Assembly: GCA_037379345.1 (NCBI GenBank)
Contig: CM074513.1
Location: 3,100,001-3,164,000, forward strand
Length of the DNA stretch: 64,000 nucleotides
Direction of reading: 5' to 3'
Source: Perna viridis
Taxonomy: Eukaryota
Shown: positions 25,163 through 64,000 of the stretch, piece after piece
Position numbering within the stretch: position 1 is the stretch's first letter
Layout: each line of letters starts with the position of its first letter
Translations under genes and position numbers: made by a program
The notes under the pieces: generated by a model
Told to the model about the DNA's origin: nothing
The model's database searches: none
What the model saw: only the letters and a program-made list of their open reading frames with translations

Positions 25163-25599
25163 AAGACTGATAAAATATAAAAACAAAAGCTTAAAGCTTT
25201 AAAAAGCTTCAATTTTGAGGTGTGTCATGGGGTTAAATTAAAATAAACCCAAAAACTATCTAAGTTAACCCAGGTTAATAGGCAGGGGTACGTCCTTTTT
25301 CTTCAAAATAAGCAAAATATCTTCGCTTTACTACAAATTTTTATTTTGGACGGAACTTTGAATGCTTCTAACATGCTTGTAGAAGCCTCGAAATATCAGT
25401 GGCATAAACAAGAAAACAATAATGGGCTTTTGAAATAAATTACAAAGCACATAGCCATTTTTAGACAGCATCAAGCTAAGCAAAAGCACTTGCTTCCGCA
25501 TGGGTGTCTTCTCAGAGGTCCGCGTTCTAAACATAACTTCTCAATCAATGCCTACTTTCTGTTTCACTGATATTGAACTCCAAAGCATTAACACGCAAA

Positions 25600-26295
25600 A
25601 TGTCTGAAGACGCTGGCACTGAAGTTAAAAATGATACCGAAGCTACTGACGAAACAAAAACAGATGCGGTGGACGAGGAAAAATCATCAGAGACCGAGGA
25701 AAAACCTGCTCCCACGAAGAAAGCAAAGTCATCCAAGAAGAGCTCGAAGCCAGCTGCAGCCGCGACACCTAAAAACAAACCTAGCAAAAAGAAATGGAAG
25801 CAAGCTCCTGTGGGACATCCTCATTATAGAGACATGATCAGAGATGCTTTATCAAACATGAAGGAGCGTGGTGGAAGCTCTAGACAGGCCATCTTAAAGT
25901 ATATTATGGGAAATTATAAAATAAGTGTGGATGAGAAGTCTGCAAATAACCACTTGAAAATGGCACTCAGAGCTGGTGTAAAAAATGGAACTTTGGTACA
26001 AAGTAAAGGACAGGGTGCTTCAGGATCATTCAGACTTGGAGAAGCGAAACCAGGGATAAATAAAAAGAAGGCAACTTCTAATAAAAAGAAAGACAGTGCT
26101 GCTCCGAAAGAGAAAAAGACAAAGTCACCTAAGAAAACTAAAAAAGCAGCCTCTCCAAAGAAAGCAAAAAAGCCTAAAGAAAATAAAAAAGCTAAAACCA
26201 AAACACCAAAGAAGAAAGCTGCTGGTTCAAAAAAAGGAAAAGCTAAAGGGTCAAAAGCTAAGGCTTCAAAAACTGAAGAAAATAAAAGTGAGTGA
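25600..26295 (+). CDS. Linker histone H1 (H1.0/H5/H1-delta-like globular domain), 231 aa, intronless CDS
   Basis: HPHYRDMI..L.ERGGSSRQAILKYI..NY..LKMALRAGVKNGTLVQSKGQGASGSFRL winged helix; Lys-rich tail with SPKK/TPKK sites; ATG at 25600 in AAAATGT context. Confidence 0.95.
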   Translation: MSEDAGTEVKNDTEATDETKTDAVDEEKSSETEEKPAPTKKAKSSKKSSKPAAAATPKNKPSKKKWKQAPVGHPHYRDMIRDALSNMKERGGSSRQAILKYIMGNYKISVDEKSANNHLKMALRAGVKNGTLVQSKGQGASGSFRLGEAKPGINKKKATSNKKKDSAAPKEKKTKSPKKTKKAASPKKAKKPKENKKAKTKTPKKKAAGSKKGKAKGSKAKASKTEENKSE

Positions 26296-31469: not shown

Positions 31470-34400
31470 TTAAATCCACCAGATGACGGTCTGTATTGAG
31501 TGACTGGCATAAACTAAGTTGATGTAACCAAGATCTGGATAGTGTACTGATATAACTCCATCTTTCGATGACCTGTGTATTCCATGAAAAGAAATGTAGA
31601 ACAGTAGAAAAACTTCTAATTATACTTTACTTATAAAAAGGTTTTATTTTCTTCATATGCAAATTGCTTCCTGGCAAAATGCCTGTTAGAGGTCAGTAAA
31701 ATTGGTTTTGAAACAATAATTTACAAAAAAAAAAGTTTCTGGTAACATGTAAACAGATATGACAAATACATATAAGGTGAAGTATATATACATGTATATA
31801 TTAACTAAATAAATGAAGGATTTTTTGTAACGACACAGTTTTAATTTTTTAAAATTTTATTGTTAAGCCAGCTTTCACTGTATATATAAATCCAGCAAAT
31901 ACCATAAAATCAATGTTTAAAAAAAAATAAATTTGTATCAATCTAAATCTGTATAGGATACAAATGCGCAATTATTTGTTTACATTCTACCGGGAACTTT
32001 TTTACCCCAACATGGTACTGAGTACTGAATACAAGGTGGTACCTGATTGGTTGGATATGGCTTGAAATTTATTTTCATTTCAAAGCTTACCCATTTATGA
32101 TTGATTTTATTTTGGTAATAATTAATAAAATGTTATAGGGTTGAAATGATTTCTCATAAATGAAATCTAGGTGCTTCATTTTTTTTGCAGTGTATTTTGT
32201 GCTGAATTTTCAAGAGTCCATAACAACTGAAATTTAGGTCAACTTTTGCCGCATGACCATGTACTTTTTTTTTGTGCAAATAAAAAGTATGCTTTTCTAG
32301 TTTTAGGAACAGAAACTCATTTTCTGCTAATTTGTGTTGTTTTCTTGAAATTAATTTTCAAACTACATAGGTACCCTATGGAAAATGCATTACAAATAAT
32401 TGCGCTCTTGTATCCCATAATACCTGTTTAGTACAATCAAAACAATAGAGTTATCTCCCTGGTGAAATGCTGTAATTTCTAAATCTACAGTATCACTCCC
32501 CTGTATGTTAATTCTCTTTGATCCTGGCATGATAAATTTACTGCAAAATTTGAAGTGAAAAATTCTATAGAAGGCCATTTTTGACATTTGAAATAACATT
32601 CTACAACCATAACTTTTTTTCAGTCAAATGAAAAAAAAATGGACCAAAACAATACAGTTCTAACACAACTTAATTTATGATATCTATTTGGAGACAGAAA
32701 TGGAAAATATGATCACAAGTGCAAATGAATTAAAAGATATACTAGTTGTCTAGAATTTGCTTAGCCTATATTGCAAACATTTAATATATAACAAGAATTG
32801 ATATTGTGTGAATATGTTACGGTGACAACAACCCAAATGGAATAAAAATGTCAGCTCAAGACAACCCATTGTCATCAATGAACAACAAGGGAACTCTCAC
32901 ACCACCTGGCAGGCTGCAGCTGGCCCTAAAACAACATTATACATTGGTACATTTGCCCTTATAGGACTCCAGCAACATAAAAGTAATCTGAAAATGAAAC
33001 AAGGCACGCATGATAATATTCCATGGCCTGTTAACTGCATAGTTTCTTATTGATTCCTCATCATAATCGAAAAATTTTATTTTTATGCTCAAAATATTGT
33101 TTTGTCAAATCCTGTGAGGATACAACAAATACTAGTAGCCCTTTACAACAAACATGTACCACATAACATAACAGGAGCAATCTACCTTTAAAATACCTAA
33201 AATGGCCCATGGCATAAAACATGGGCTGCTTGTAGAATTCATCTTTTGCAACATTAACTATGTCAACAAAGTTCTTCACCCAGTTTGGACCACCTTCCAT
33301 GTCAAGGGCTATGTTCCAATCTGTCCATCCTGTTACCCAGTTGTTAACATCCTACAGTAGATTATTGACAAAAACTCCCATATCACTCATATGTCTGTTA
33401 CTACACATGTAAAAGATATAAAAATTACTTCACATGTAAAAAAAATAAAGAATAATACACATGTCAAAGATCATGTAAAAGTATTAATATTTGATCATTT
33501 TCCGCTATTTTCGTGATGAACATAAAAACATGAGAAATAACACATATGAAGTTGACTTTTAACACTGCATAATGCTTATCATTTTTTGAAACTGCAAAAT
33601 TGATTCCTGTAAATGAGTTCACTCAACTGAATATGCAAAAATAAGAAATTGCAAAATTTGATACACTTACAGTATGAAAATTACTACCTAAAACAGGAAT
33701 GAAAACCAAACAAATAAACTAACTTTATAAAAGCAAAAAACACATTGGAGGAAAAACATATCTGTTTCCTAAGAGAAAAATTACATTTAATTCTAAAAAG
33801 GATCTGAGCCACTCACACTATGAACTAGGCCTGAAAATTAGTAATTGTGTAACATCCAGCTTATTTTTTGTTATGGGAATGTAATCAAGCAAAAGAATCA
33901 TAAAACACAATCAAAATCCAACAGAAAAGAGTGAAGATTTTTAATTTCATGATTTAGTATGCTCCTTTTGTATTATTCATTAAAAAAAAATGTAAAGAGA
34001 GGCACCACTGGTGTTTTTTTAAGCAAAATTAAGACATTTCTTATCAAACGGCAGATTTGAGGCCCACCTCCTTTCCATATCACAAAAGATGACAGAATAA
34101 TAATATGAGCGTCAATACAAAAATAACAACCATATACATAGCAAATTTCATTATCCTGTACACAGTCATATTTCAAGAAGTAACATCTTATCAGCAGCAT
34201 TTAAATCAAATATATAAAGGAAGATCTAAATCAATAAATTAATTGAATACAAGAAGTACTCAAAATCAAAACTATCTAAATAGGAAACCAAATCCATCGC
34301 AGAGAGGTGATTTCTTTGCAATTCAGTTCAATACCTGAAAATAGCCAGTATAAAGATTTGGAAAGGCTTGGGATTTTAGTGTGCTTTTATGTGTTTGCAT

Positions 34401-37400
34401 TCAAAAACTCATAATGATAGAAAATTGTAAGTACAAGTACCTGTATAATATCATGAGCATAACTTTCTGCTCTCTCCCAGCTCCCAAGGAGGACTTTACC
34501 AAAAGGTAACAGGGAACCAGCACAAGCCTCTGTGGCCAATAAAAATTTGTCTGGAAATTTTTCATGTGTGCTAGTCAGAGCTACAACTGGAGTTAAAAAA
34601 TCCTCATACCAGTGTACAGCAATGCCCGATACATATTTGTAGGCATCAGGAGTGGAGAACACCTAAAATCAAGATGCTAGAAATACTGTATTACAGTAAG
34701 GCATTTTTGACTGAGAAAGAAAATAATCTAGTGAAATACTAATATTATGTGCAGCTGTCCTAAACAAACATTAGCAACACTAATATAATATTGCCAAGGA
34801 ATATCACAAAAACATACTGTATTCTTTGTATCTACCAAGTGTCGTGAAATTCGGTTGAGTAGTTTCAACATGGAGTCGTTACATTGCCAAAATGTGTGAT
34901 TAACAGGTGGGCAAGACAAAAAGAATAAGTCTCCACACCATATAAGGGAGAGATATTACAAAACTGAAGATAATACAAATTGTCAGTAGCTCATATTTCT
35001 TTTAAAATTCAATAAAATAAACAGTTTAAACATGATTTTTCATAAATGAAATTTATTGTATCTTGCGAGTTGTATGCCAGTTCATATATCTATAATCATA
35101 AGTCTGAATAACAATTTATTATCTAAAATTGAATGGATGTGAATTCTAAAGAAGGCATGTCTCTATGTATACTGATTGATAGCCACTATTTTTGTGAGGT
35201 GATCAGAAGTGTTTAAATAAAAGCTTGCTATTATTTTACTACATAAGAGCATACACTTAACTACATTAATGGCATAAACATTTGTGACCTGTAAAATTTT
35301 AAGGAACATTTTGCAAAATTTTGCACCAGTAAAATTACCCGCTTCACATTTTTTCTTTGGATTTTAAATACATATTTGATCATTTCACAGATATATAAAC
35401 ACAACATGTTAAACCTGTTCAGCCCAGTAGGGTAACAGAAATCTAGCATCATCTAAAATCATTAGCTTTACATGTTGGTATCCATACTTCTCAAGGGTGG
35501 GACCAAGATCTAAGGCAATAAAATCTCTCTGTTGTATGGCAGTCCAACCCATTGCTTGGAAGCTGAACTGTGGAATGTACCCATCAGTTGGTTCATTCTG
35601 GGCAGTTAAACCCCAAATATTAATACCATGCTCAGCATAGGCTTGTAAAAATCTATAAATAATGAAAAAATGTTTAATATTACTTTGATAAATTTTGACC
35701 AAAACAAAATAGCAATGAATATACACAATCAAAACTAATGCAGTTGATTGTCCATTATTGAAAGTTGAGAATTCCCCCAAAATTGAATTTTTGCATCTTT
35801 ACAATCTGATTCAATTTTCTAGAAATATATAGATATTGTGAAATTGGTTGCTTAAATATTGAATTGTAAATTCATTTCCTTCATATTGAGTTCTTCAAAA
35901 CTTCTGTATTTGGTACCAGCATATAACATCACCCAACACAGTAACTTCTTATGAAGAAAACTTAATGACTCTCTTTTAGGATTATATTGGCAAAAAAGTT
36001 CATTTAAACAGTAAAACAATCTTAGTTGTTTTGTAAAAAAATAAATACTAAGTATATATATATATTTTTTATCAGTGCAAATGAAATTTACTTGACAAAA
36101 TAATGAGCCCAGGTTTTATAATATTTCCCTCCAGGAGCCCCTATCAATGTACCATTTCCAGTCATATTCTGGTTAGTTTTCATCCAAGCTGGGGCACTCC
36201 AAGGGCTGCCAAATAAAGTAATGTTTCTCCTGCTCAATTTCTGTGCTGCTTTGATGAAGGGAATCTGTAAAATGAATACTTCTTTATTTGTTTCAAATCT
36301 ATTAACAGCTTATATCTATCTCATAAAATTAGCTAGAATAAGATACAAACAATAAGAAAGCTAGCTAAATGAATAGCCCTGCTCAACTGCACCTAATTCA
36401 GGTAAGGTTACAACCCAGGTGTGTCAATAGAAACCATCAACCAGTAAAATAGAATGGCTACTCTATTTTAAAAAAATTGATGAACTCTTGCAAAATTTTA
36501 CCTGCCACTTTTTCTTTTTTGTTCCTGCTATTTAAAATACTACTGACATCCCTGTTACCTCATTATCATCCTTCATATGATCCCTATTAACATTTTAACA
36601 GAATTTACCATGGAGCAGCAAAGGAGTTGCACTTACAAAATACTGTAAAGATACTAATTTTCACTATTTTCATGGTGGGCAGAAAACCGCGAAAAACTAC
36701 CTGAGAAATTAATTTTGAACACTATACATGTGTATTGCGCTCATCATTTTTTTAAAACCGCCAAAATTGACACCCATTAATATGTTCATTTGGCATAAAC
36801 CACGAAAATTAATATGTTTACAGTACTGACGTGTAATACCTTTAAGTTATATTATCACTAATATTATCTATCTTCATTTCCTACACCTCTAGATATCTTA
36901 TCTTGCTAGAAGATTTCATAAAAAACCATTGAGCTCTGAAGGAAGAGTTGTGCTTACAAGATGTAAGGACATATGAACAGATGAACAGAGTTGTAAATTT
37001 TTATTGCTTGTTTGTGAGAGTTTTTTAAAAAATTTTTATCATGTGATAGGTTGATGATGATCGAAGAAAATATGGGGTCAAGGCAATCACAAATCATGCA
37101 ATACGAATAAAAAAAGCATATGTATATACCAGTTATCATTGGACATCTTAACTTAATCAGAAGCAAACTTGAATAAGAAAATGAAGCTGAACGACAAGGA
37201 TCTAAAACCCAAGTCTCAGGGAAAATGGGAATCATAATTTATAACCATACTTTATATTTCAGATCCTCCAAGGCCACTGTAAAATTTTGTAACATGAAAT
37301 CTCCTGAATGGTCATCATAAGAGTATGGTCTGGTGGAGAAATCACAGCTAGCCATTGGTATTCTACCTAGGGTATACTCTATACCTGTTAGACACAGAAA

Positions 37401-39888
37401 AGTAGAAAATACTGTAACAAGCTCACGAAAGTTATACCCCCTACTCACTTCACTTGAACGTAACACATGCAATATCCTTAGGTTGGATTGTTTTTCACAT
37501 GCAGACACATGTAACATTCTTAAGTTGCATTGTTTTTTACATGCAGACATAATATTTTAAATTTTCATTTTTTCATGAACATCTACTTAGTATCTCAACA
37601 TCACCATAAAGTTTCATCAAAATTCACAGATAAGTTAAGGAGGAATTTACAAATCGAACATGTACAAATTATCTCCCCTAAGAGAAATGAAAGAATCATT
37701 TTCTATAATGCAATAATTCATGCATTTTATAGAATGCCAAGCCTGTCTAGAAATTTATCTCAAAACCCAGTGTGTGGTTTAGAGGATGTGCTTACATGAT
37801 GTAACATAAATATGTAAAACCTTACGATGAATTTTGTGATTTTAACACAGGTACTATTGAGTGATAAACAATCAATAAAAAAAACAGAAACAACAGAGAA
37901 TTTTTAAAGGTAAAACACCAATGTACACTGCTGTTTGAGTTCTAGTCTTATCTGAAACTTAAATCTTTATTGTAGCCCTACCCCTTTATACATGTATCAG
38001 CACAAACCTCCAGGGGAGTAGTAAGAAGCCAGCAGCATATCTTGGGCTGTTGGTGACAGACTAGCAATGTTAATACCAGCAGCATCTGTAAAGGCTCCAC
38101 CAAATCCTAACATTGTTTGATAAGTTATGTTCTTGTTGATGGTGAAAACCACTGTAATGAGAATACACATAATGAACAGCATCATAAAGACTTCAAAGCT
38201 GATTTTTATGGTTCCTGTTGATGCAAAATTTTGAAACAAAACCGATACAAGACATGAGTTATTCATGGTAAAAAAATAGGAAACTTGGAGAAAAAAATAG
38301 GAATTAGAAGGTAAGGTCTAGATCTGTAACTTTTGATATTAGAATTTTAGATAAAAAAGTAGGAATTCCTATTTAAAAAGGCAAAAATACATGTCTGCAA
38401 TACATGTAAATCTAATTTTACATTCACTATAAATTGTTTAATTAAAAAAGTCATCAATTCATGTATAAAGTATTTAAAATATAACTGCTTCTTTAAATGC
38501 ACTTGACTGGAAATACATGTCTTAAACTAAACCTTTGCTATCTGCAGAAGACACAAATTCTCCACAAGTCTTGTTCAGTCTCCGTCCTTCCTGTGTAGAT
38601 GTGTACACAGTATATTTCCCTCTGGGTAGAGGAACATTAGGCTCCACTGTGTCACAATAAGAAGAGTTACAGGCACACACAAATGAACTCTGTCCAAAAT
38701 GTCTTCTTTCACATAGTTGTATACCTGTGTAAAAGAAACCACAAGATGAAAAGGTAAAATTTCAAATTAGTAGATCTTTATGAATATCAATTTTTGAAGC
38801 ATTTTCAGAAATTCAGGGTCATTCTGTCATCAAAACTGAGAATCTCATTCGTAATGCTTTACATTGACATCATTGCTATTTTCTAACACAAGTGCTGGAT
38901 TATATTATACCACTAGTCATTAATATTTGTTATTTCATACCAGAAAAAAATTAGTAATTTCAATTGGATAAAACCTTTACATATGGTATTAATTAACCTG
39001 CAGTATAAAGTTTTACCAGTCAATATCATCATATGATAATGCTAGGTTATGAATTTAGAGTTACATCCCCTTATTAAAACTCATTCGCGATCAAGCAGTT
39101 GTCAATGTAAATATGCAGAAACACAATTTTCATGGCTTTATGAAAAAATCAAGGATATGGTTCCTCAATGAAAGAAACATAATAGTTGTTGATAAACTGG
39201 TCAATATCGTGATATTAAGACTGTCCACATGGCAGCAGTAACGACTAAGACCGTAATAATGACCCAGCTGACTTAACACTAGCTGCGAAATCGTAGCTAT
39301 TGATCTTTTTTTTTATTTTGTGATCTAACGTTAAGAAAATACAAAAAAAAATAGTTAGAGCTACGTTTTGCAGCTAACTTAACACATGTGCAGGATTATA
39401 CCACTAGTGGCACCCATGCTTTCCCGGGAAGATATGATTTAAACATAAAAACCAGTCCCTGTGTATTGTAAATGTCACCTTTATTACACTACGACGGTGA
39501 TATTGGTTGGTAGGAAAAAGAAAACATTCAAAAATATGTTTTAGTTGTAACATTATTAGAATATTATGGGAACTGTAGTGACCCTTTTGGTATTCCAAAA
39601 TCTGGAAGGACCATGCAGTCATGTTGCATTGGGAAAATACAGTCTTTTTCAACCAATAACACACTAGGTTAAAATCTTTAAAATAAAAGCTTATATTTTA
39701 ACAATAAATATGTAAATAAAATTTTAATGGACAAATCATATTTATTTTAATGGACAAATCATATCACGGGGCACAGAGTTAAATCTGCTTGTGTTAGTGG
39801 AAAAAAAACACTACTGTTTGAATATTCTTTTTATAAAAAACATTTTACCTTCAAATAAAATTAATAGTGTCGTTAAAAAGAGGATCAT
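31470..39888 (-). CDS. GBA: Lysosomal acid glucosylceramidase (GH30), ~505 aa
   Basis: Exons: 39888-39849 (putative signal peptide [13 protein letters not shown], less certain), 38724-38533 (CACNSSYCD), 38151-38008 ([11 protein letters not shown]), 37384-37251 ([18 protein letters not shown]), 36264-36092 ([12 protein letters not shown]), 35652-35415 (TAQNEP, acid/base Glu), 34662-34441 (AVHWY, LATEAC nucleophile Glu), 33351-33197 ([13 protein letters not shown]), 32540-32424, 31572-31470 (HSIQTVIW, stop). All junctions are GT-AG and in phase. Confidence 0.95.
36643..36823. mobile_element. MITE with CTGTAAA..TTTACAG termini, TA duplication
   Basis: TA-CTGTAAAGATA ... TATGTTTACAG-TA in a GBA intron. 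Confidence 0.65.
39280..39376. mobile_element. 97-bp MITE with 9-bp target site duplication
   Basis: ACTTAACAC-TAGCTGCGAAATCGTAGCT ... AGCTACGTTTTGCAGCTA-ACTTAACAC. Confidence 0.85.
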
Positions 39889-40855: not shown

Positions 40856-41010
40856 TCCATGGACCCAAATGTGTACAGAAGCAAGCTGACTTATGGAAGA
40901 AATTGAATCACCATCGTAAATTACAATTACTCACCAGTCACGTGTTATGGTTCCAAGAAAAAAAGCGGAGAACGTGTATTATTTTCATAGTGATGACACA
41001 TTTTATTTTC

Positions 41011-44000
41011 ATGGAATTTAAAATCACAATTCTAATTTTGATATCCCCAAGTATATTACGTATTAGCACAGGTATCTGTACATTATTCATAATATTTAGC
41101 AATATAGAGATAAGCTTATAAGTCTTTATTTCATATATTTTAAGATATTGCTTTATATTGATTTTTGTTTAATTTGTAAAGAGGATCAAAGTTGAATTCA
41201 AATATGATTTAAAAGATAGTGGTTGAAATAAAATATAAATAAAGACGCGTCCGAAATTCAGGCCCCCCGATATCAGAATACAAATATATGCATCACATGA
41301 ATGACAAATATTCAAACCAAACCGTTTTTTTTTTCAGGTAACATCGACGAGGGTGATCCTATAATTATACTGAGAGGATCGTGTAATGCGACGGCAGATG
41401 CTACATCATACAGCATAACATGTTCTGCAAATACAGTTCCGTTTGGTAATACGGCAAAGTTTTTTATGGACGGTGACTTCGTCAACAATATACGAAGATA
41501 CAATAATCGATGTTACCGGACTGTGAATTCTGATGTTTGCCAGAGGAATACATGTAACTGTTCTGGTGATGGAAAATCTTATACTTATATTTATTCGAGA
41601 ACAGCGAGAGATAATGCCTCATTTGGCTGCTCAATGAACTTTGTTATCAAGAACAAAATACAGACTCATGAATCTCGTCTAATTACAGTCAAAGACATTA
41701 AAGGTAGTAGTAGATATACCAGGGGCGGATCCAGGATTTCATGGAGGGGAGGGATACTTACGAGAATCAGTATAAAAGGAAACCAGATTATGACATGTTT
41801 AATGAATGAATATGATAAATTGCCACATTCAATACAATTTTTAGCAGATTACGATGTTTTTTTGTTATTTTCTTTTGGAAAAGGGGGCGTATGCTCATTA
41901 CGCCCTCACCAGGACCAGCCACTGTGTACGTGAATGCCATGATAGGCGCGGCGTTTTTTTCTGGATTTTGATATGCACCTTCTCGTCACGTGATATTGTT
42001 CGTATTCTGTGTAAATCCGAATTCAACAGATTTTTAAAGTTCGTTTTGTTGTTGTATTTTCCCAATACTGTCCCAGGTAAGGGGAGGGTTGAGCGCTCAG
42101 GGACATGTTCAGTCCCGCAACATACTTTATGCCTGTCCCTAGCCAGGAACCTGTAGTCGCGATACAAGTTATATCATATTGTTAAATGAACTGTTTGGTT
42201 AATAACTGTTGTATAAAAATAAATTAATTTGAGATTAATACTGTAATCTGATTGGTTAAAATAATTTTGTTATATCTAAATGGATAAAAAAATATTCAGT
42301 TAAATCCCTATTCAGTTAAATTCAGAGCTACTTTTTCATGTTTAAAGATAAAAATATGTTTTAAAATTAATTTATAAGAAATGGCTATAATAAAAATTTT
42401 GTCTATTGAAAAATAACATGAATTTTCCATGTGCATATTTTGTTTATTGCACTTCGCGCAATAAACAATATGCACATGGAAAATTTATGTTATTTTTCAA
42501 TAGGCACAATTTTTATCATAAACAATTCTTAAATGTATTTAGAAATTCAAATGTATTAAATCTTATGTGATTAACAGTTTGCAGCAAAAATATGTACTTA
42601 AAAAATGACTGTTATAAATTGTTTCGGTCTATGAGGAAATAACCTCAATTACGTGGTGCACACTATAAATTAATATTTAGTGTGCACCATGGGCATTGAG
42701 GTTATTTCAAATAGCCCGAAAAACATATAACAGTCGTTTATTATAATTTAATTTTATTATCAAAGTTAAGGTGCAAATCAGTGAAAAAGGTTAATGACGT
42801 CACAGTCACGGTACAAAAATTTGGTTTATGAGATGATGGATAAAATATTTTATCCAATTAGAAAGCGTGTTACACCTGAAATTATTATCTTATATCATTT
42901 ATATAGATAAATGTGCTACTCATTCAAATCAAGAAGACAAAGAGATTGGTCACAATTGCAGTTACATCGCCACAAACATTACGGAGGAATACTCAACCTG
43001 TAGCGAATACAATGGGTCTGCTGAATATAAAGGGAAATTCGCACCAACACATCTTTCATCAGTCAGATGGGTACTAAATAATAAAACAAAGGACAACATC
43101 ACATGCATCTGTTTAAATCATGAAGGTGAGATATCTACTACATTTTTACACGTACACTGGTAATATGAAATTCAATATTTGACAAAACACCAAACAAAAA
43201 TGTGTCAAAATTCCAATTCGGAACGTCGAGTGATTACAAAATAATATTCCATGTTGCTATGCATAATTTTAAAAAAATGTATTTTTTTTTTTACATCCTT
43301 AATTTTAAACGGCTTTAAATTGATTATATTATACGGTTAATGTGACTTTTATAGGTGTGGTTCAAACACCAGTATTTGATAGAGTGTCTATAGTTACTCT
43401 CTTATCAGTGGTACCTGCGTTATTGCTGTTAATTACGTTTGCTGCACTTAAGTACAGGTGCTTTAAACGCAGGAAAGGTAATTATAATAATCAATGATTA
43501 TAATTTAACTTAGAAAAAGTCGATCACTCTAATAAAAAGTTCAAGAATGACTTATTGGAACGTATGAAATCTTTGATAATTTGCAACTCCGTACTGTATC
43601 TATGTGTCAGGAGTTTTCGGCGGAACTTCATACTTATGTAGCAGTCTTTCTAAAAATCAGACAAAAGGTGATTCATGCATGTTAAAAATCCACCGAATTT
43701 AGTTTTATTTCTTGTTTAGAAACAGTTACTGATCACATAACCAGTCTTATTTTTTTCCATAGGCTGTTGCATTTATGAGATAAAAAATATATAGATTGTA
43801 CATAAAATTGACACTTTGAAAGAGTTATCATTCTTGATTTGGTTTCATTTGGTTAATTTTGGTGGGAGATTAATGTATAATTATCTAAAAAGTGCAGATC
43901 TGAATGCAGAAATGATTTTCGTTATGTGAAAGTATAGCATATGTTGACTGAAAAAGCATCGTTTGTTTGGGGAGTTTTTTACACCATGAATCACTTTACC

Positions 44001-47000
44001 ATTCGCAGTGTCTGAATTTTATGTGGACATTTCCTTCTAACACCCCACTTTTAACGTCAAAATTAAGTATATATTTTGAAGTTCCGCCGAAAAAAAAAAC
44101 ATAAACAAAAACAAAAACATAAAACATAAACAAAAACCAAACTTAAAAAAACCAAACAAAAAAACAAAAAAACATTAAAAAAAACGCATTTCCGGGCACA
44201 CGAAATTGTATTGTGTCCAACAGGAAACTGAAAAAGCATCTTGTGTAGATTAGATAACAGTCATGCTTTACATCACAAAATTGCAAATGTCCATTGAAAT
44301 CATTCTAATTTAGTCCTTCCGGTCATGTTGTTACGGGAGATTTAAGCATCAACGATAACAAATCTCTCCGTAAGGTCCTTTCTAAAGGTCCCAAGTACAG
44401 TGAACCACGCTTCATAAATTGGAATTATAACTTTAAAGTTCTTGTGGATGCCGTGGAGGACTACGCTAGAAAATGGATTAAACGAAACCGAGAAGACATT
44501 GATTTACTGTCAGAGTGGGTAAAGGCTGTGAGTCTTTAATTTTGAAACGTATGAAAATTTTAAGTAGGTCTATGAGTGTCAATGCTACATCAGTCTTCAA
44601 AGACCCTATGTAGCAAAAACATTGTCTACTCTACATGACAAAGCCCAAAATAACATTGTTTCTGTCTGCAAAACGTATTACAGCCAATGTTTATTATCAT
44701 AAGTAGACATAGAGAATAATAGCAGTGATAAGACCTATACTGCCACTACACTATGCATATTCAACAAACGGTCGGCATTCCTATGGGAACAAATTGTACT
44801 CCTCTACTGGCTGACCTATTCCTTCACTCTTATGAAGCTGATCTGATCCGAAAGAAGAACATCATTTAGCTAGATCCTTTACTCTCAGTTTCCGCTATAT
44901 AGATGACGTATTATCGTTAAACAATCCTTGTTTCGGGGATTTGATACATTGCATCTAACCCAAAGAACTTGAGAGAGTAATCAAGGGAACCAAGGTTATA
45001 GCAGTAATCAAAAGAATGTAATCCAGGGACAAAGACCAGACAAGGAAAAAGACATACACAACAAAGAACATAAAGTAACCAAAATTATACATACAAAGTA
45101 ACGAAAGCAAATGAGCAACTCGGACTCCACTGAAAACTGGAAGCATGGACCAGGTGCACCGGTAGGGTAAGCGTCCTCTGCTTTTCTAGAAACACCCGCC
45201 GAGTTGCGCATAAAAAGTCAAGTCCGGGGTAGACAAACGAGGAAAGGAAAACTATAACCCGTTGAATAAATCAGTTTTCATGGTGCAGATGGATACACCA
45301 TAACGATCCACGAGTTCATGATGACGACCATAAAACTTCTGCAGTGATGACTTTAATCTTGTAGCAACATAACTCTGTTCCAGAAGCCTATTTGTTAGAG
45401 TTCTAGCGCGATACAAAAAGTCTGCGTAGTTTCGGTTGCAGCACCCCTTCTGCACCTGCGAAAGGATTTTTCATATTATAACTCATACATTATGCCAGAG
45501 CTTGCAGAAACTACGCAGACGTTTTGTATCGTACTAGATTTCTTACAATTAGGCTTCTGGAACAGAGTTATGTTGCAACAAGACTGAAGTCATCACTAAA
45601 GAAGTTTTATGGTCGTCATCATGAACATGTGGATCGTCACGGTGTATCCATCTGCACCATTAAAACTGATTTCTTTCTACTGCTATAACCTTGCTTCCCT
45701 TGATTATTCTTTCAATGTGTCATAGTTTTCCTTTCCTCTTTCATCTGCCCCGGACTTGACTTTTATGAGCAAATCGGCGGGTGTTTGTAGAAAAGCAGAG
45801 GACGCTTACCCCACCTACGCACGTGGTCCATGCTCCCAGTTTTAAATGGAGTCCGAGTTGCCCATTTACTTTTGTAACTTTGTATGTACTATTATAGTTA
45901 TTTTATGTTCTTTTTTGTATTTGTCTCTTTTCCATGTCTGTATTTTGTCCCTGGATTACACTCTTTTGATTTCCGATGGGATCGTGGTTCCCTTGATCAC
46001 TCTAATCATGCGAATGAAAGAACAGTGCGAAATCTAAAACGTATTTTCTCAATTTGAAAAATTAAAAATTACACAGGAGGTGATTCATGTATATTTCTTA
46101 TTCAGAAACAGTCACATACCATATAAGCAGTTTCAGTTAGTCATTGTGTCGTTGAATTTTTTTTTTAAATATATAGATTGTATATGAAATTGGGTCTTTC
46201 AAAAAGTTATCATTCTTGATTTAAACGATCTAAGTGCGAGATAAAAGTATATAGTTTTCAAAATTCAAATACATATCTATATACAATATAGCATATGAAG
46301 AAAACGCTTCTTTTTCTGTACCCTGAATGACCTCGGTCTTTGAAAATATCTGAATTATATATGGATTGCTGAACTTAGAATTCATAATGCACACACCAAA
46401 GATGGAACAAAGAAAACGTAAAAAATGATAAGTGTAATATGAACATCTTTTCTAAAAAAAATATTAGCATTTAGATAGCAAGTCAAATTTCTTTCTTTTT
46501 GCGTTGATAATTTTTCAACATCACGATTAAAGCAGTGAAAATGAAGGAAAAAGTGTCGAGCTAAAATATTTTTTTCAGCCCAATAAGTAGCGTTGATATG
46601 ACTGCAAGAAAATAATATTGATATTTATTTCATAGATATACACGCTTCAAGCGATAGAGAAGATGCCAATACAAATGGGTAAGTATGAACCATTCGTCAC
46701 CAGTCATTTTGATTAGAAATTTGTTTTATTATCATAAGCTATAACTCATATAATATAAACATCTATCAAGCTGAGTTTTTTGTGTGTGTCAACGTAACAC
46801 AACTTATCAAAATTAGAAAGAGAGAACAAAATCGTGTGTAATTTCTGTTGCCAAATTATTAACAAACCTCAATGTGCTAATCAAAATATAATGAATACAT
46901 TTCTGTAATGAAAATGATAAATTCGCAGGATTAATTTTAATTCAAACATATAAAAGTGTTTTACAAAAAGTAACTAAGATTAAAGCCCAAGAAATTTGAA

Positions 47001-47360
47001 CGAAAAGATTAAATAGCAAAACAAAGAAAACACAGAAAATCACATTTATATTTGCTGTTTTAACAAATAAGGAAATTAAAACATACCCAAAATTAATCGG
47101 ATATAGATTAGCAAAAGTAAAGAAGAACTGAAAAGTAAACGCAGATGTGAGCGGTTTCTGTATTCTGCAGAAATCTGTATTTTATATATTTTTTCTATAG
47201 ATACATGGATCTGGATGACACAAACAGAGATCCTTATATTTATGCAATTCCTTTAAGAACGATTTATGAAGATCTACATGGCAGGGTATCAAGACATATT
47301 TACACTCCATTCAACATCAACATTTCAGAAGGATCAACCGGAAATGCCGAACGTCACTAA
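41011..47360 (+). CDS. Uncharacterised type I membrane receptor (~323 aa): signal peptide, Cys-rich Ig-like ectodomain, TM helix, tyrosine-motif tail
   Basis: Exons 41011-41071, 41338-41703, 42907-43125, 43355-43477, 46636-46678, 47201-47360; all GT-AG, phases 1/1/1/1/2, 972 nt open. TM VSIVTLLSVVPALLLLITFAAL followed by KYRCFKRRK; tail GYMDL..YIYAIP..TIYEDL..HIYTPF. Confidence 0.82.
42375..42531. mobile_element. Foldback/palindromic MITE
   Basis: ~75-bp arms (..GAAAAATAACATGAATTTTCCATGTGCATATT..TTTATTGC / GCAATAAACAATATGCACATGGAAAATTTATGTTATTTTTC..) around a 7-nt loop. Confidence 0.85.
42603..42740. mobile_element. Second foldback/palindromic MITE
   Basis: GACTGTTATA..GAAATAACCTCAAT..TGGTGCACACTA / TAGTGTGCACCA..ATTGAGGTTATTTC..TATAACAGTC. 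Confidence 0.8.
44255..44972 (+). mobile_element. Penelope-like retroelement RT fragment, degraded and internally deleted
   Basis: GHVVTGDL..LSKGPKYSEP..INW, QQTVGIPMGTNCTPLLADLFLHSYEA, FRYIDDVLSLNN. Confidence 0.88.
44973..45445 (-). mobile_element. Penelope-like 3' end, inverted copy
   Basis: Reverse complement of 57830-58300 (RLKSSLQKFYGRHHELVDRYGVSICTMKTDLF plus 3' structured region). Confidence 0.88.
45478..46003 (+). mobile_element. Penelope-like 3' end
   Basis: YARACRNYADVLYR..KFYGRHHEHVDR, then the same 3' repeat ending GGTTCCCTTGATCACTCT. Confidence 0.88.
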
Positions 47361-59525: not shown

Positions 59526-62500
59526 TGATTGCTAAATTGTCAACGCCCGTCTGCTTTAGTTTTGGCCCAACGACCATTTATCTATTTACGTTAAGATATT
59601 ATACCAAGTTCACCAATAGTATGGCTCTACGACTTTCGTATACCTACGACTGTCATCATTAGTTTGGTACCGCATTTTCCATTTTATTGTTGTCATGGAT
59701 ATGTTGTAAACTTGTCAACTTTAGTGAGGGCACGATGACTTTGTGAAGTCTATTATAATTCTAGTTTAATCGTCGACACTTCATTTGGTAATGCGATTAT
59801 ATAACTAACGTTGTGTTTTGCAGCTTGGTATAAATTATATCCTGTGAGTTACATTACGAGTTTCGCTTGAAATATAAGTGTTAGCGTAAATGATTAGCTC
59901 CGATAAATTTATATATATACAGCGCTGTTGTGAACAAATTATACGTATTTTTCCGGTGAAAGTCCGATGGATTATGGAGATTTATTTCTCATTCATTGCG
60001 CATTCCATCCACATATAACTTTATCAGCTCATTGTAGTTTATTCTGACCGTTATTTCTGATGTCAAACTGTATTCAGAAAATTTACCGTCCATACTCGTC
60101 AAGGACATTTACCGTAAATATTATACAAAGATATTACCGTAAATACTGCACAAAACAACGACAACTATAAAGGATAAGTATACCGTAACTGTGATTGGAG
60201 ATTTCAGTGAACCAGTACAATATAAAAAAACTGTTAATTTTTCAATTTTATAGACAGTAAATTTTATTAATATTTATTTACATATGTGAATTTATTCATT
60301 GTTTCTAGATTGATAAATTTTGATTATATATTTCAGCTCCTGCATGATCCTGTTTCTCTTGTTTCTCTGCACATTTAATCAGACTTTGACAGACTAGTGA
60401 GTCATTTTTCATCTTATCATTCATATATTCATACATTTAACCCCTATTCGATCATGAGCAGAGATGTGAGTTTTACGGACACTGCTTTAAAGCAGAGGGG
60501 TCAAGATAATCCAGAAAAAACTTTCTAATGAAGAAATTCAGAAAATGATAAAATATCTGAATCAAAATACCCAATATAAGGTTGTAACAGATACAGAATT
60601 TGACCTTATTAGACATAGCACTCCAAGAGAGGTAGTTAAGCGAGACCCAGGTCAAACTTCAGGTAAATCGCCTCCCCTACACCTGTCCGAAAATACACCC
60701 TTGTACCTCTACAGAAAGACGATACGATATCGGCTGCTAGTAATTACAACTGGCAAAGACCGCGTTTGCCTACGTTTTCGGGTGAGGAGAAATCGGAAAC
60801 CACATTTGATGTGTGGAAGTACGAGGTAAATGTTTAATACGAGAGAAAAATTTTGAGGACACTTTTGATTCAATCTATGAGAAATTCATTGAAGGGTTCG
60901 GCATGAAATTTATTATTGACAATACCGGAAGTTTCCTCTCCTGATCAGGTTTTGGAAAAATTATAGGGGGTCTATGGTAATGTTTATACCAGCGAAGCCT
61001 TACTGCAAAAGTTTTATACGGAACGACAGATGCCAAACCAATCGGTCGCGAATTATGGCATGAAATTGCAATCGATTTTGCACTCCGCAATTGATAAGGG
61101 TCAGTTGTTTACACTTCAAAAAGATGACATGCTCAGATCAAAATTTTGGTCAGGCTTGCATGATCCGCTTCTCAAGAATGTAAGTCGACATAAATATGAT
61201 TCCGCAGAATCCTTCGATGAATTACTTCGCGATGTTCGGGCAATTGAATTAGATCTGTCGAACTCTTCGAGAAATGAAAATATTGCATCTTCCGGAAAAG
61301 GTGTTCAACATAGCTCGATGTTTACTGATTCCAAGTCGATTTCGGATCTGGTTAAGAAAATTGATCAGATTGGTACTCGCATAGAGTCGATAGAAACCGA
61401 ACTCAAGAATCTCAAAGACCAGAATAGTGTTCCTCAGAATGCCTACGGTAATCACAATCGTGGCAACGCGCAGAGATATGGCCATCGGGGTGGCTATAAA
61501 AATAATAGAGGAAGAGGTGGTTCGAACCGACGTGGTTCATTCAACCAACAATCTCAGGTTCAGGGTTAACAGAACAGTAAACCGTCTTTAAACTGGTAGG
61601 AGTCTTGAATGAAGGGCGAATTGGGGACTCTACTGATTTGATACAAGCCCTGTAAGTGGTGATTTATTTGAAAGGTTAGTTGGCAATGCCAATGAAAGTG
61701 ATGTCATAGTCAATCAAGTAAAATGCAAGGCACTTCTTGACAGTGGAAGTATGATTTCAACTATTGCTGAACCTTTGTTAAGCAGGTTGAAACCTTGTCC
61801 AACTTTGAAAAAGGTTGATAATTTATTAACAGTTAGTGTAGCTAATGGTGATCGTTTAACTTATTTAGGCTATGTAGAGATAGTTCTGGAAATTCCATAT
61901 TTAGTAGGGACTTCTTTTCCTGTTCCCATGCTAGTGGTTGCTTCAACGGTGTATAATAGTCAAGTTTCGTTAGTACTTGGGACAAATGTATTGAATATTT
62001 GCAAGTCCAATATGTCTGATGATTCTACTTTGCCGAAAGAATGGGACACAGCCCTGTCTTCTCTTGCAAGGAATTGATTGAGTAATGTAAACTCGATTAA
62101 CAAAAAGGTTGTTACCCTAAAGCCTAGAGCTTCCATGACAATCTCGGGTATGGTATGTAATGCAAGTAAGGCTGAAGTTACTGTTGTTACTGAAAACTCA
62201 GAAAAATCTTCCTTTGATGGAGTTGTAGTTTGTCCTAGAGTTGTTTCATTGAAGAAGGAAGGTAAGTGTAGAATTCCTGTTAGAATTAGTAACATGACAG
62301 CTAAAGCAATTCAAATAAAACCGAAGTCTGTATTATGTAGTGCTAGTGAAATCAAAGTTATACGACACGTCGATCATTTCAATCATATTCCGGATTTAGC
62401 GCGAGAATCGGCTAATAAGTCAGATGCTGGTAAAACCGTGGATATGTTGAAGGGATTAAGTTTGAATATTGACGATGCCTTACCAGATGAAATTAAATCG

Positions 62501-64000
62501 CGTCTGATTAGTATGATTGAGAAATGGAAATCGGTGTTTTCGACCGGTCCTACTGATCTCGGTTTTACAAATCTAGTTGAACATGAAATCAAGCTTCATG
62601 ACGAGACACCATTTAAGGAACCGTACCGACGTATCCCTCCGGGAATGTTCGAGGAATTTCGGCAACATCTTCGAGAGATGTTAGACGTGGGTGCGATACG
62701 GGAATCTAATAGTCCGTTCTCGAGTAACGTTGTCCTTGTTCGGAAGAAAGACAACTCTCGTAGATTCTGCATTGATTTTCGGAAATTGAATAGTCGAACT
62801 ATTCGCGACGCATATCCTACAGCTCGAGTAGACGAGACGATCGAGAGTCTGGCTGGAGCGACTTATTTTTCCAAATTTGATCTTCGGTCGGCCTATTGGC
62901 AGTGTGGAATTAGGGAGGAAGACAAGAATAAAACAGCGTTTTCGGTCGGTCCGCTTGGATTTTACGAATGCAATCGGCTCCCATTTGGTCTTACAAATGT
63001 TGTTGCATGTTTCCAGAGAATGATAGAAAAATGCATGGGGGAACTGCATTTACGTGACTGTCTTGTTTTTCTTGATGATATTATAGTTTTCTCCAAGTCG
63101 GTGGATGAACATTTTTCTAGGCTAGAGCGAATGTTTCGTTGTCTCAGTGACAATGGTCTTAAACTGAAAGGTAGTAAGTGCGTATTTTTCCAGACTGAGG
63201 TAAAATACCTTGGTTTTGTAGTATCAGTTGATGGTATTAAACCGGATGATGAGAAATTATCGGCCGTGCAGAACTGGATGAAATTACCAATGTCAGAGAG
63301 TTACGACGGTTTTTAGGGTTTACTTCCTTCTACCGGAAGTTTGTCAAGGATTATAGCAAGATAGCTAAACCCTTGAATGATCTGCTAATAGGGCATCCGT
63401 CCGGGAAGAAACAGAAAGGTCGGTCTAAGATTAAGAGTAAAATACCATGGAAGTGGACTGCTGTAGAACAGAAAGCTCGAGATGAGTTAATACATAAGTT
63501 GACGAATCTCCCTATTCTTACGTATGCTGATTATATGCTACCATTTATCGTACACTGCGACGCGAGCGGCGACGGTTTGGGCGCAATTTTATACCAGAAG
63601 CAAGACGGACACAAGCGCGTGATCGCATACGCTAGTAGAAGCTTACGAGGCGCGGAGAAGTTATATCCGGCACATAAACGCGAGTTTCTGGCTTTGAAAT
63701 GGGCCGTCACGGATAAATTTCACGATTATTTAGTTGGTAACCGCTTCGAAGTCAGAACCGATAATAATCCGCTGACGTATGTGCTCGGAAAAGCTAAACT
63801 TGATGTTACGTCTCAGCGATGGATAGCATTGTTGGCTGATTTTGATTTCACTATCACCTATAGATCTGGTAAGTCAAGCATTGATTGTGATGCATTATCT
63901 CGGCTTAATTCGAAGAATGAAGGTAATAAAGGCATAGGTTCCATTATTGATGAAAAGGTTGTAAAAGCTGTTTGCTTGTCCTCAGTAGTTTCAGATTGTG

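Follow-up and report, generated by a model that had tools for sequence, protein, structure and literature searches.

A transcribed gene for a small immunoglobulin-superfamily membrane glycoprotein with a predicted V-like domain in the mussel Perna viridis

A stretch of 64,000 nucleotides of the Perna viridis genome (GenBank assembly GCA_037379345.1, contig CM074513.1, positions 3,100,001 to 3,164,000 of the forward strand), hereafter the window, carries at positions 41011-47360 an intact, transcribed gene that encodes a small member of the immunoglobulin superfamily (IgSF), a type-I membrane glycoprotein. The six exons, all on the forward strand, amount to 61+366+219+123+43+160 = 972 nt, which gives 323 codons and a stop codon at 47358-47360. 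All introns have GT-AG ends with pyrimidine-rich acceptors; introns 1-4 are in phase 1 and intron 5 is in phase 2, the switch being made by the 43-nt exon 5. The protein would consist of a signal-like peptide, two cysteine-containing extracellular modules, a transmembrane helix and a tyrosine-rich tail of 69 residues, and the two ectodomain exons hold 12 cysteines (7 in exon 2 and 5 in exon 3) and eight N-x-S/T glycosylation sequons (3 and 5, respectively).

In translation, exon 1 (E1, 41011-41071, 61 nt) provides the start codon and a hydrophobic signal-like peptide, 20 codons plus one nucleotide in all, with hydrophobic windows of 2.0-2.6 and a donor that reads CAG/gtatct. The open frame of this exon extends back to 40903, and an alternative in-frame ATG at 40993, six codons 5' of 41011, has a purine at -3 and hence the better context; it may be the true start. 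Exon 2 (E2, 41338-41703, 366 nt) encodes domain D1, for which there are a translation, a structure model with an immunoglobulin (Ig) V-like beta-sandwich and spliced contigs that contain the whole exon. Exon 3 (E3, 42907-43125, 219 nt or 73 codons), both junctions of which are present in contigs, encodes a membrane-proximal cysteine module. Exon 4 (E4, 43355-43477, 123 nt) contributes a short stalk, the transmembrane helix SIVTLLSVVPALLLLITFAAL, with a 19-residue hydrophobicity of about 2.0, and the basic stop-transfer sequence KYRCFKRRK. It is followed by an acidic juxtamembrane piece of the tail, SSDREDANTN, from exon 5 (E5, 46636-46678, 43 nt), and by the remainder of the cytoplasmic tail from exon 6 (E6, 47201-47360, 160 nt), in which five tyrosines (in YMDL, PYIYAIP, TIYEDL and HIYTPF) precede the stop codon. 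The original prediction, drawn from the letters of the window, had proposed six exons splicing in phase into 323 residues, a phase-1 layout of about one domain per exon, eight sequons, a transmembrane segment with KRRK and the tail motifs YMDL, IYAIP, TIYEDL and IYTPF; the exon translations and introns agree with it throughout, save for the phase of intron 5. All database searches and fold predictions described below were run on single exons.

Transcription of the gene is documented in public sequencing data. Part of the window is contained in 17 probable RNA runs of six studies, and contigs from four runs, each of a different study, were mapped on 41320-47310. The E2-E3 and E3-E4 junctions are crossed within single contigs (41701/41703 to 42905 and 43123 to 43353, with a two-base alignment ambiguity), namely X1 record 1, X6 record 16 and X8 record 23, which come from separate studies and have 0-2 mismatches. 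As contigs that skip introns arise only from RNA, the runs are indeed RNA. Transcript depth is low and even in runs of at least four studies. Each exon differs from the window by 0-2 bases in the contigs of the four studies; over the 366 nt of E2 the differences number 0, 1, 0 and 2, in contigs that suppress minor alleles.

The joining of E4, E5 and E6 was judged from depths in bins along the locus, since the direct list of joints is dominated by repeats. For X1, with a contig depth of 40.3, and X6, with 8.47, multiplying the contig depth by 123/200, 43-44/200 and 110-111/191 gives the bin depth at E4, E5 and E6, respectively. In X1, X5 and X6 the bin over E5 (46520-46719) corresponds to the contig depth times 43-44 nt, and in X5, X6 and X8 the depth is zero in the bins that separate E5 from E6. 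Moreover, X6 record 16 continues for 241 nt past E4, a length accounted for by E5 (43 nt) together with 198 nt of E6 and 3' untranslated region. By this arithmetic, E4, E5 and E6 are joined as modelled, a conclusion supported indirectly but precisely.

At the 5' side, X5 record 8 continues upstream of 41335 for 154 nt with sequence foreign to intron 1, and the E2 acceptor (41338) is therefore used. In sum, the predicted junctions are exact in RNA for E2-E3 and E3-E4 and agree with depth from E4 to E6, and the acceptor of E2 is in use, but the E1 donor at 41071 is without direct support. A contig designated P0073 is colinear with the genome and thus uninformative on splicing. The T-run before the E2 acceptor (41298-41337) differs in length between the public contigs P0001 and P0073, and its length alters which intronic ATG is in frame with E2. 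The spliced product was not found in a collection of 5.8 billion proteins searched with E2 and with a 210-residue unspliced open reading frame (ORF) of the window scored on E2; only the unspliced fragment P0001 was returned.

The nature of D1 emerged from its relatives and its predicted structure rather than from known sequence models. No Pfam family matched any exon, E2 giving nothing at E<=10, which accords with the statement in the original prediction that no named family was recognised. When 1.84 billion representatives were scanned in full with E2 by HMMER, 72 cluster representatives were retrieved at E<=1e-3, and E2 together with 56 short relatives formed a D1 alignment of 57 sequences. 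In that alignment (in-frame E2 numbering), Cys58, Cys67, Cys72 and Cys74 are invariant, and Cys28 and Cys97 are nearly so (>=90%). E2 keeps all six of these family cysteines, has one extra cysteine at position 15 and three sequons, and conforms to the family spacing C-x29-C-x8-C-x4-CxC-x22-C, scoring E 1.2e-32 against the family profile. The conserved motifs LNCSS, P.G, AEF, CxCSxDG..Y and CxMxF are likewise all retained, AEF in the form AKF. Among the 57 sequences no Pfam Ig model matched at E<=0.01, while the D1 of P0014 is marginal to Ig_2, with 28.3 bits against a cutoff of 27.

With the 57-sequence alignment as input, AlphaFold2 returned a beta-sandwich model of D1 with a predicted local distance difference test score (pLDDT) of 91.7 and a predicted template-modelling (TM) score of 0.84. 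Its nine strands make up a two-sheet sandwich, as in Ig domains of 7-9 strands. In Foldseek, V domains of antibodies or nanobodies fill the first 49 places (E about 2e-4, TM scores 0.45-0.63). The best match in an exhaustive VIA-align comparison is domain 1 of Nectin-2 (Z score 9.8, root-mean-square deviation (rmsd) 2.6 over 98 residues), followed by CD8, T-cell receptor (TCR) V, PirB, ICAM-2, CD28 and PD-1, with PECAM-1, Lutheran glycoprotein and MDGA1 also among the top matches; Z scores of 8-10 are only modestly above the background stated for VIA-align, but the matches are almost uniformly of the IgSF and extend over the entire domain. Searched with a profile, PDB sequences gave only Ig matches, beta-2-microglobulin and Fc-gamma-RIII, at non-significant E values of 0.6-1.4, and in the weak match to beta-2-microglobulin Cys28 and Cys97 are in register with the B- and F-strand cysteines Cys25 and Cys80. 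These two D1 cysteines are 69 residues apart, which fits the range of about 55-75 for the B-F pair of Ig domains.

A tryptophan in strand C is typical of Ig domains, although not obligatory; in this family it is replaced by phenylalanine (AEF, or AKF here). On the strength of the model, D1 is identified as an Ig V-like domain that is invisible to sequence models and that carries four extra conserved cysteines in its C''-D-E region, which these cysteines are predicted to staple. An Ig-like domain with B- and F-strand cysteines and an inserted cysteine cluster, as first proposed from the letters, is thus upheld by the nine-strand model, the IgSF-only top matches and the conservation of the cysteines.

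D1 is by no means unique, in contrast to its earlier description as the domain of an orphan receptor. A six-frame search of the Perna viridis genome gave 24 matches to E2 and 35 to the family profile, so that at least 35 D1 exons are present, alongside clear homologues in Mytilus. Most of the copies, 25 of 35, lie on contig C8 at 15-41 Mb, with sub-clusters near 24.4-24.6, 25.8-26.3, 30.5-30.6, 34.2-34.3 and 35.4-36.2 Mb, and the rest are on C5, C6, C7, C13 and C14, apart from the present copy, the only one on C3. Several of the C8 matches are interrupted by stop codons and could represent pseudogenes. Within the window, a weak second D1-like match at 38425-38637 on the reverse strand has stop codons inside it and was dismissed as chance.

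Of the named matches to E2, 11 were looked up, and eight of them prove to be proteins of Mytilus coruscus, M. trossulus or M. galloprovincialis with a single D1 stretch of the family type, labelled 'Ig-like domain-containing', 'HMCN' or uncharacterised. The other three are weak, multi-stretch matches: a 4478-residue protein of the alga Cyanophora, a fish IgD heavy chain and a fish Fc-receptor-like protein, of which only the two fish proteins have Ig-domain repeats. Long Mytilus members consist of D1, a second cysteine domain, Pfam Ig_3/I-set domains, a transmembrane segment and a tyrosine-rich acidic tail, and short members (e.g. P0027, P0049 and P0066) of D1, a stalk and a transmembrane segment with a tail that is long, short or almost missing. 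For P0003 of M. coruscus, the best match in the Perna genome is the present E2 (40% identity, E 2.4e-14), nearly tied with a copy on C7, whereas the paralogues in the same genome are at most 33% identical to E2; this argues for an old lineage that has been kept open. Taken together, sequence comparison places the gene in a mytilid-specific family of putative receptors with a six-cysteine D1. No description of such a family was found in the literature searched, nor have the Mytilus members been studied experimentally there.

The second extracellular module is less clear-cut. The five cysteines of E3, which also has five sequons, fall roughly in register with those of the domain that comes second in the long Mytilus members (C ... 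WxC ... CxC), and the score against a five-sequence profile is not significant, ranking 64th of 1001 in comparison with shuffles. The last strand of the module may be supplied by exon 4. In the Perna genome the second domain of P0003 has no match, a regular-expression scan for second-domain exons downstream of six paralogues yielded nothing real, and tblastn of full-length Mytilus proteins on the paralogue loci recovered D1 exons only. Both Cys15 of D1 and the first cysteine of E3 fall outside the family pattern, and we infer that the two could pair with each other.

The tail has the marks of its family. In Mytilus, the tails repeat YAAP or Y..AP, followed about ten residues on by [ILV]-Y-[DEN], and G/L-Y-[LM]-[DE]-[LIV]; the counterparts in the present protein are YAIP, IYE and (G)YMDL. 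In the longer members, Y-x-[DE]-[ILV] and YAAP motifs abound in the tail. Shuffles of the present tail that kept its composition contained YA.P in 1.2% of cases, Y[LM][DE][LIV] in 1.4% and the ordered pair YA.P ... [ILV]Y[DEN] in 0.06%, figures that overstate the significance because the patterns had been set post hoc. The motif types surrounding the tail tyrosines thus recur in homologues, in line with the original prediction, for which their conservation was critical. TIYEDL, with threonine at -2 and leucine at +3, fits loosely, and neither strictly, the immunoreceptor tyrosine-based inhibitory motif (ITIM), (S/I/V/L)xYxx(I/V/L), and the switch motif (ITSM), TxYxx(V/I). The activation motif (ITAM), Yxx(L/I)-x6-12-Yxx(L/I), does not describe the tail, in which the gap from YMDL to YEDL is 17 residues. 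PDZ-binding and FERM-binding motifs are absent from the tail.

The receptor gene is surrounded by housekeeping rather than immune genes. Upstream lies an intronless linker-histone H1/H5 ORF with a full globular domain (25573-26295, forward strand; Pfam PF00538, E 4.7e-29), and between the two, at about 33970-38270 on the reverse strand, a GH30 glucosylceramidase-like gene has its exons, of which three ORF pieces match Pfam PF02055 (E 6e-27 to 9e-8); the 5' end of this gene faces the receptor gene from about 2.7 kb away. A 412-residue reverse-transcriptase ORF follows downstream (62078-63316, forward strand; RVT_1, E 1.5e-30), where the GC content rises to 0.41.

The introns hold further debris of transposable elements (TEs). 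Intron 4 (43478-46635) is swollen with repeats, comprising inverted repeats I1-I6 and direct repeats that are labelled D1-D2, not to be confused with the domain. It contains a broken reverse-transcriptase fragment at about 44330-44960, a foldback element some 1 kb long at 44974-46003 with nested inverted arms that are 84-92% complementary, and a duplicated segment (43651-43840 and 46063-46222). Contigs resembling the foldback have a summed depth of more than 100,000 in all four RNA runs, with very high repeat depth at 44920-45919, which indicates that this repeat family is very abundant in transcripts. In intron 2 there are two short palindromes with perfect stems, similar to miniature inverted-repeat transposable elements (42375-42531 and 42600-42720), and matching contigs are abundant in the RNA runs. 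The introns are therefore rich in TEs, in line with the original prediction of a TE-rich segment with putative fast turnover, although the neighbouring genes are those for a linker histone and a GH30 enzyme.

On these findings, it is reasonably probable that the gene encodes a type-I IgSF receptor, the V-like D1 of which binds a ligand while phosphorylated tyrosines of the tail dock SH2 proteins. For the structural half of this reading the results given above speak directly, whereas the signalling half we infer. The ligand of D1 would be extracellular, a molecule of a cell surface or of a microbe, and upon engagement Src-type kinases would phosphorylate the tail tyrosines, on which SH2 proteins could then dock. 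TIYEDL would suit a phosphatase of the SHP type, YMDL, which follows an acidic run, a kinase of the Syk type, and YAIP an adaptor of the Crk/Abl type. On this view haemocytes or epithelia would probably carry the protein, as a receptor with a modulatory part in immunity or adhesion. There is a molluscan precedent in CgIgR of the oyster, a receptor that has Ig domains and recruits Syk through an ITAM (PMC6994640).

Several observations weigh against such a receptor. Two of the four contigs that cover the start of E2, X6 record 16 and X8 record 22, extend into intron 1, and with intron 1 retained the frame opens at an ATG at 41301, giving a product that has no signal peptide; exon 1 with its donor at 41071 and its signal peptide is plausible but unproven, and this is the weak point of the model. 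The single-sequence AlphaFold2 model of E3 is unusable (pLDDT 42), and no relative of E3 or E6 was detected in the Perna genome. In the strict sense, the tail contains no ITIM, ITSM or ITAM. The statistics on the shared motifs refer to patterns set post hoc. Finally, the gene stands alone on C3 among housekeeping genes, apart from the cluster on C8.

The alternative that survives best, rather unlikely as we judge it, is a cell-cell adhesion molecule of the nectin/JAM/CAR type, in which D1 would bind itself or a family member in trans, and turnover or coupling to the cytoskeleton, not immune signalling, would be the task of the tyrosines in the tail. Domain 1 of Nectin-2 as the best structural match of D1, and ICAM-2, PECAM-1, Lutheran glycoprotein and MDGA1 near the top, would fit this role, as would a small ectodomain of two modules rich in predicted glycosylation sites, the low and even transcript depth in at least four studies and the housekeeping, non-immune neighbours. 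However, the Z scores of adhesion molecules and immune receptors lie within one unit of each other, so the fold does not discriminate between the two, and the tail is devoid of the PDZ- or FERM-binding motifs noted above. Large, fast-diverging and clustered families, moreover, are more typical of immune receptors.

It is improbable that the gene is a decaying, dispersed copy of the family, transcribed yet yielding no working receptor, either because retention of intron 1 removes the signal peptide or because the ectodomain is truncated relative to the long members. The intron 1 contigs, the position as the sole family member on C3, the want of detectable genomic relatives for E3 and the tail, the load of TE insertions in intron 4 and the absence of the spliced product from the 5.8-billion-protein collection all point in that direction. 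Against this stand six open, in-phase exons with canonical splice sites, and spliced contigs with 0-2 mismatches in several studies. The six family cysteines and the hallmarks AxF, CxCSxDG and CxMxF have been kept in spite of a paralogue identity of at most 33%, which implies long purifying selection, and the short combination of D1 and a transmembrane segment is a normal form in Mytilus (P0027, P0049 and P0066). A polymorphic allorecognition determinant, for instance a guard against transmissible neoplasia, as the original prediction had allowed, is scarcely credible: the format recalls that of the Alr proteins of Hydractinia (PMC9546547), which come from a clustered set of genes and combine an unusual V-like D1, overlooked by sequence models, with tail tyrosine motifs, but the exons differ by 0-2 bases among four studies, with no sign of high allelic diversity (though contigs hide rare variants), mussels are solitary and do not fuse, and this copy sits outside the C8 cluster.

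The receptor reading stays in front, and for the family as a whole a bolder extension, improbable at present, is conceivable. The C8 cluster and the dispersed members would in that case form a mussel counterpart of the leukocyte-receptor complex, made of fast-diversifying V-like receptors in paired formats, some with a long tail bearing tyrosine motifs and others with a short one, which could integrate activating and inhibitory signals for the recognition of non-self or altered self. P0025, a short-tailed Mytilus member of the family from a Logan contig, has an arginine within its predicted transmembrane helix, in which it resembles the vertebrate activating receptors that pair with ITAM adaptors. 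Bivalves depend on receptors encoded in the germline, and mussels are notable for their resistance to mass mortalities. Such a set, if real, would bear on transmissible neoplasia and on why mussels are unusually resistant to disease.

What was already known is that relatives exist as uncharacterised Mytilus proteins and that IgSF receptors with tyrosine motifs are a well-known kind. The new elements are an apparently unannotated Perna member, the assignment of its six-cysteine D1 as V-like by structure, a census of the family, located by the paralogue search mostly on C8, and the tail motifs that its members share. The mytilid family offers concrete candidate immune or adhesion receptors for studies of expression, ligands and SH2 partners. 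The locus also illustrates that genes of this type can be missing from public protein sets, where only single-exon ORF fragments of it were found.

Set beside known systems, the gene is comparable first to its Mytilus relatives. CAC5419777.1 and CAC5387769.1 of M. coruscus, XP_063420080.1 of M. trossulus and VDI22592.1 of M. galloprovincialis have a homologous D1 (E 1e-13 to 1e-5, 27-40% identity) in which all six cysteines are kept, and the Mytilus family proteins are likewise of the type-I membrane format, with YA.P, [ILV]Y[DEN] and Y[LM][DE][LIV] in their tails as here. They differ in that the long members carry two to three Ig_3/I-set domains, where the present gene has one short cysteine module, and the tail here is shorter (69 residues) with the motifs in a different order. 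With vertebrate IgV receptors (domain 1 of Nectin-2, CD8, CD28, PD-1 and TCR V), the predicted model of D1 has in common a nine-strand V-like sandwich with a B-F disulfide, putative in D1 (Z 8.6-9.8, rmsd 2.6-3.5 over about 100 residues); the sequences, by contrast, are only 7-16% identical, and D1 has phenylalanine for the strand-C tryptophan and four extra cysteines between C'' and E.

Two invertebrate systems are similar in format. The Alr genes of Hydractinia also form a clustered family, with N-terminal V-like domains that were found by structure prediction and ITAM- or ITIM-like motifs in the tails (PMC9546547), but they belong to another phylum and are highly polymorphic, whereas the exons here are nearly invariant among samples, and the likeness considered here is one of format. 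CgIgR of the oyster combines a canonical ITAM with five ordinary Ig domains, where the present protein has one V-like domain, a short module and no canonical ITAM; it is compared by format, with no claim of homology. As it too comes from a bivalve, is an IgSF membrane protein of type I and has tyrosine motifs in the tail (PMC6994640), it is a plausible functional analogue of the protein encoded at this locus.

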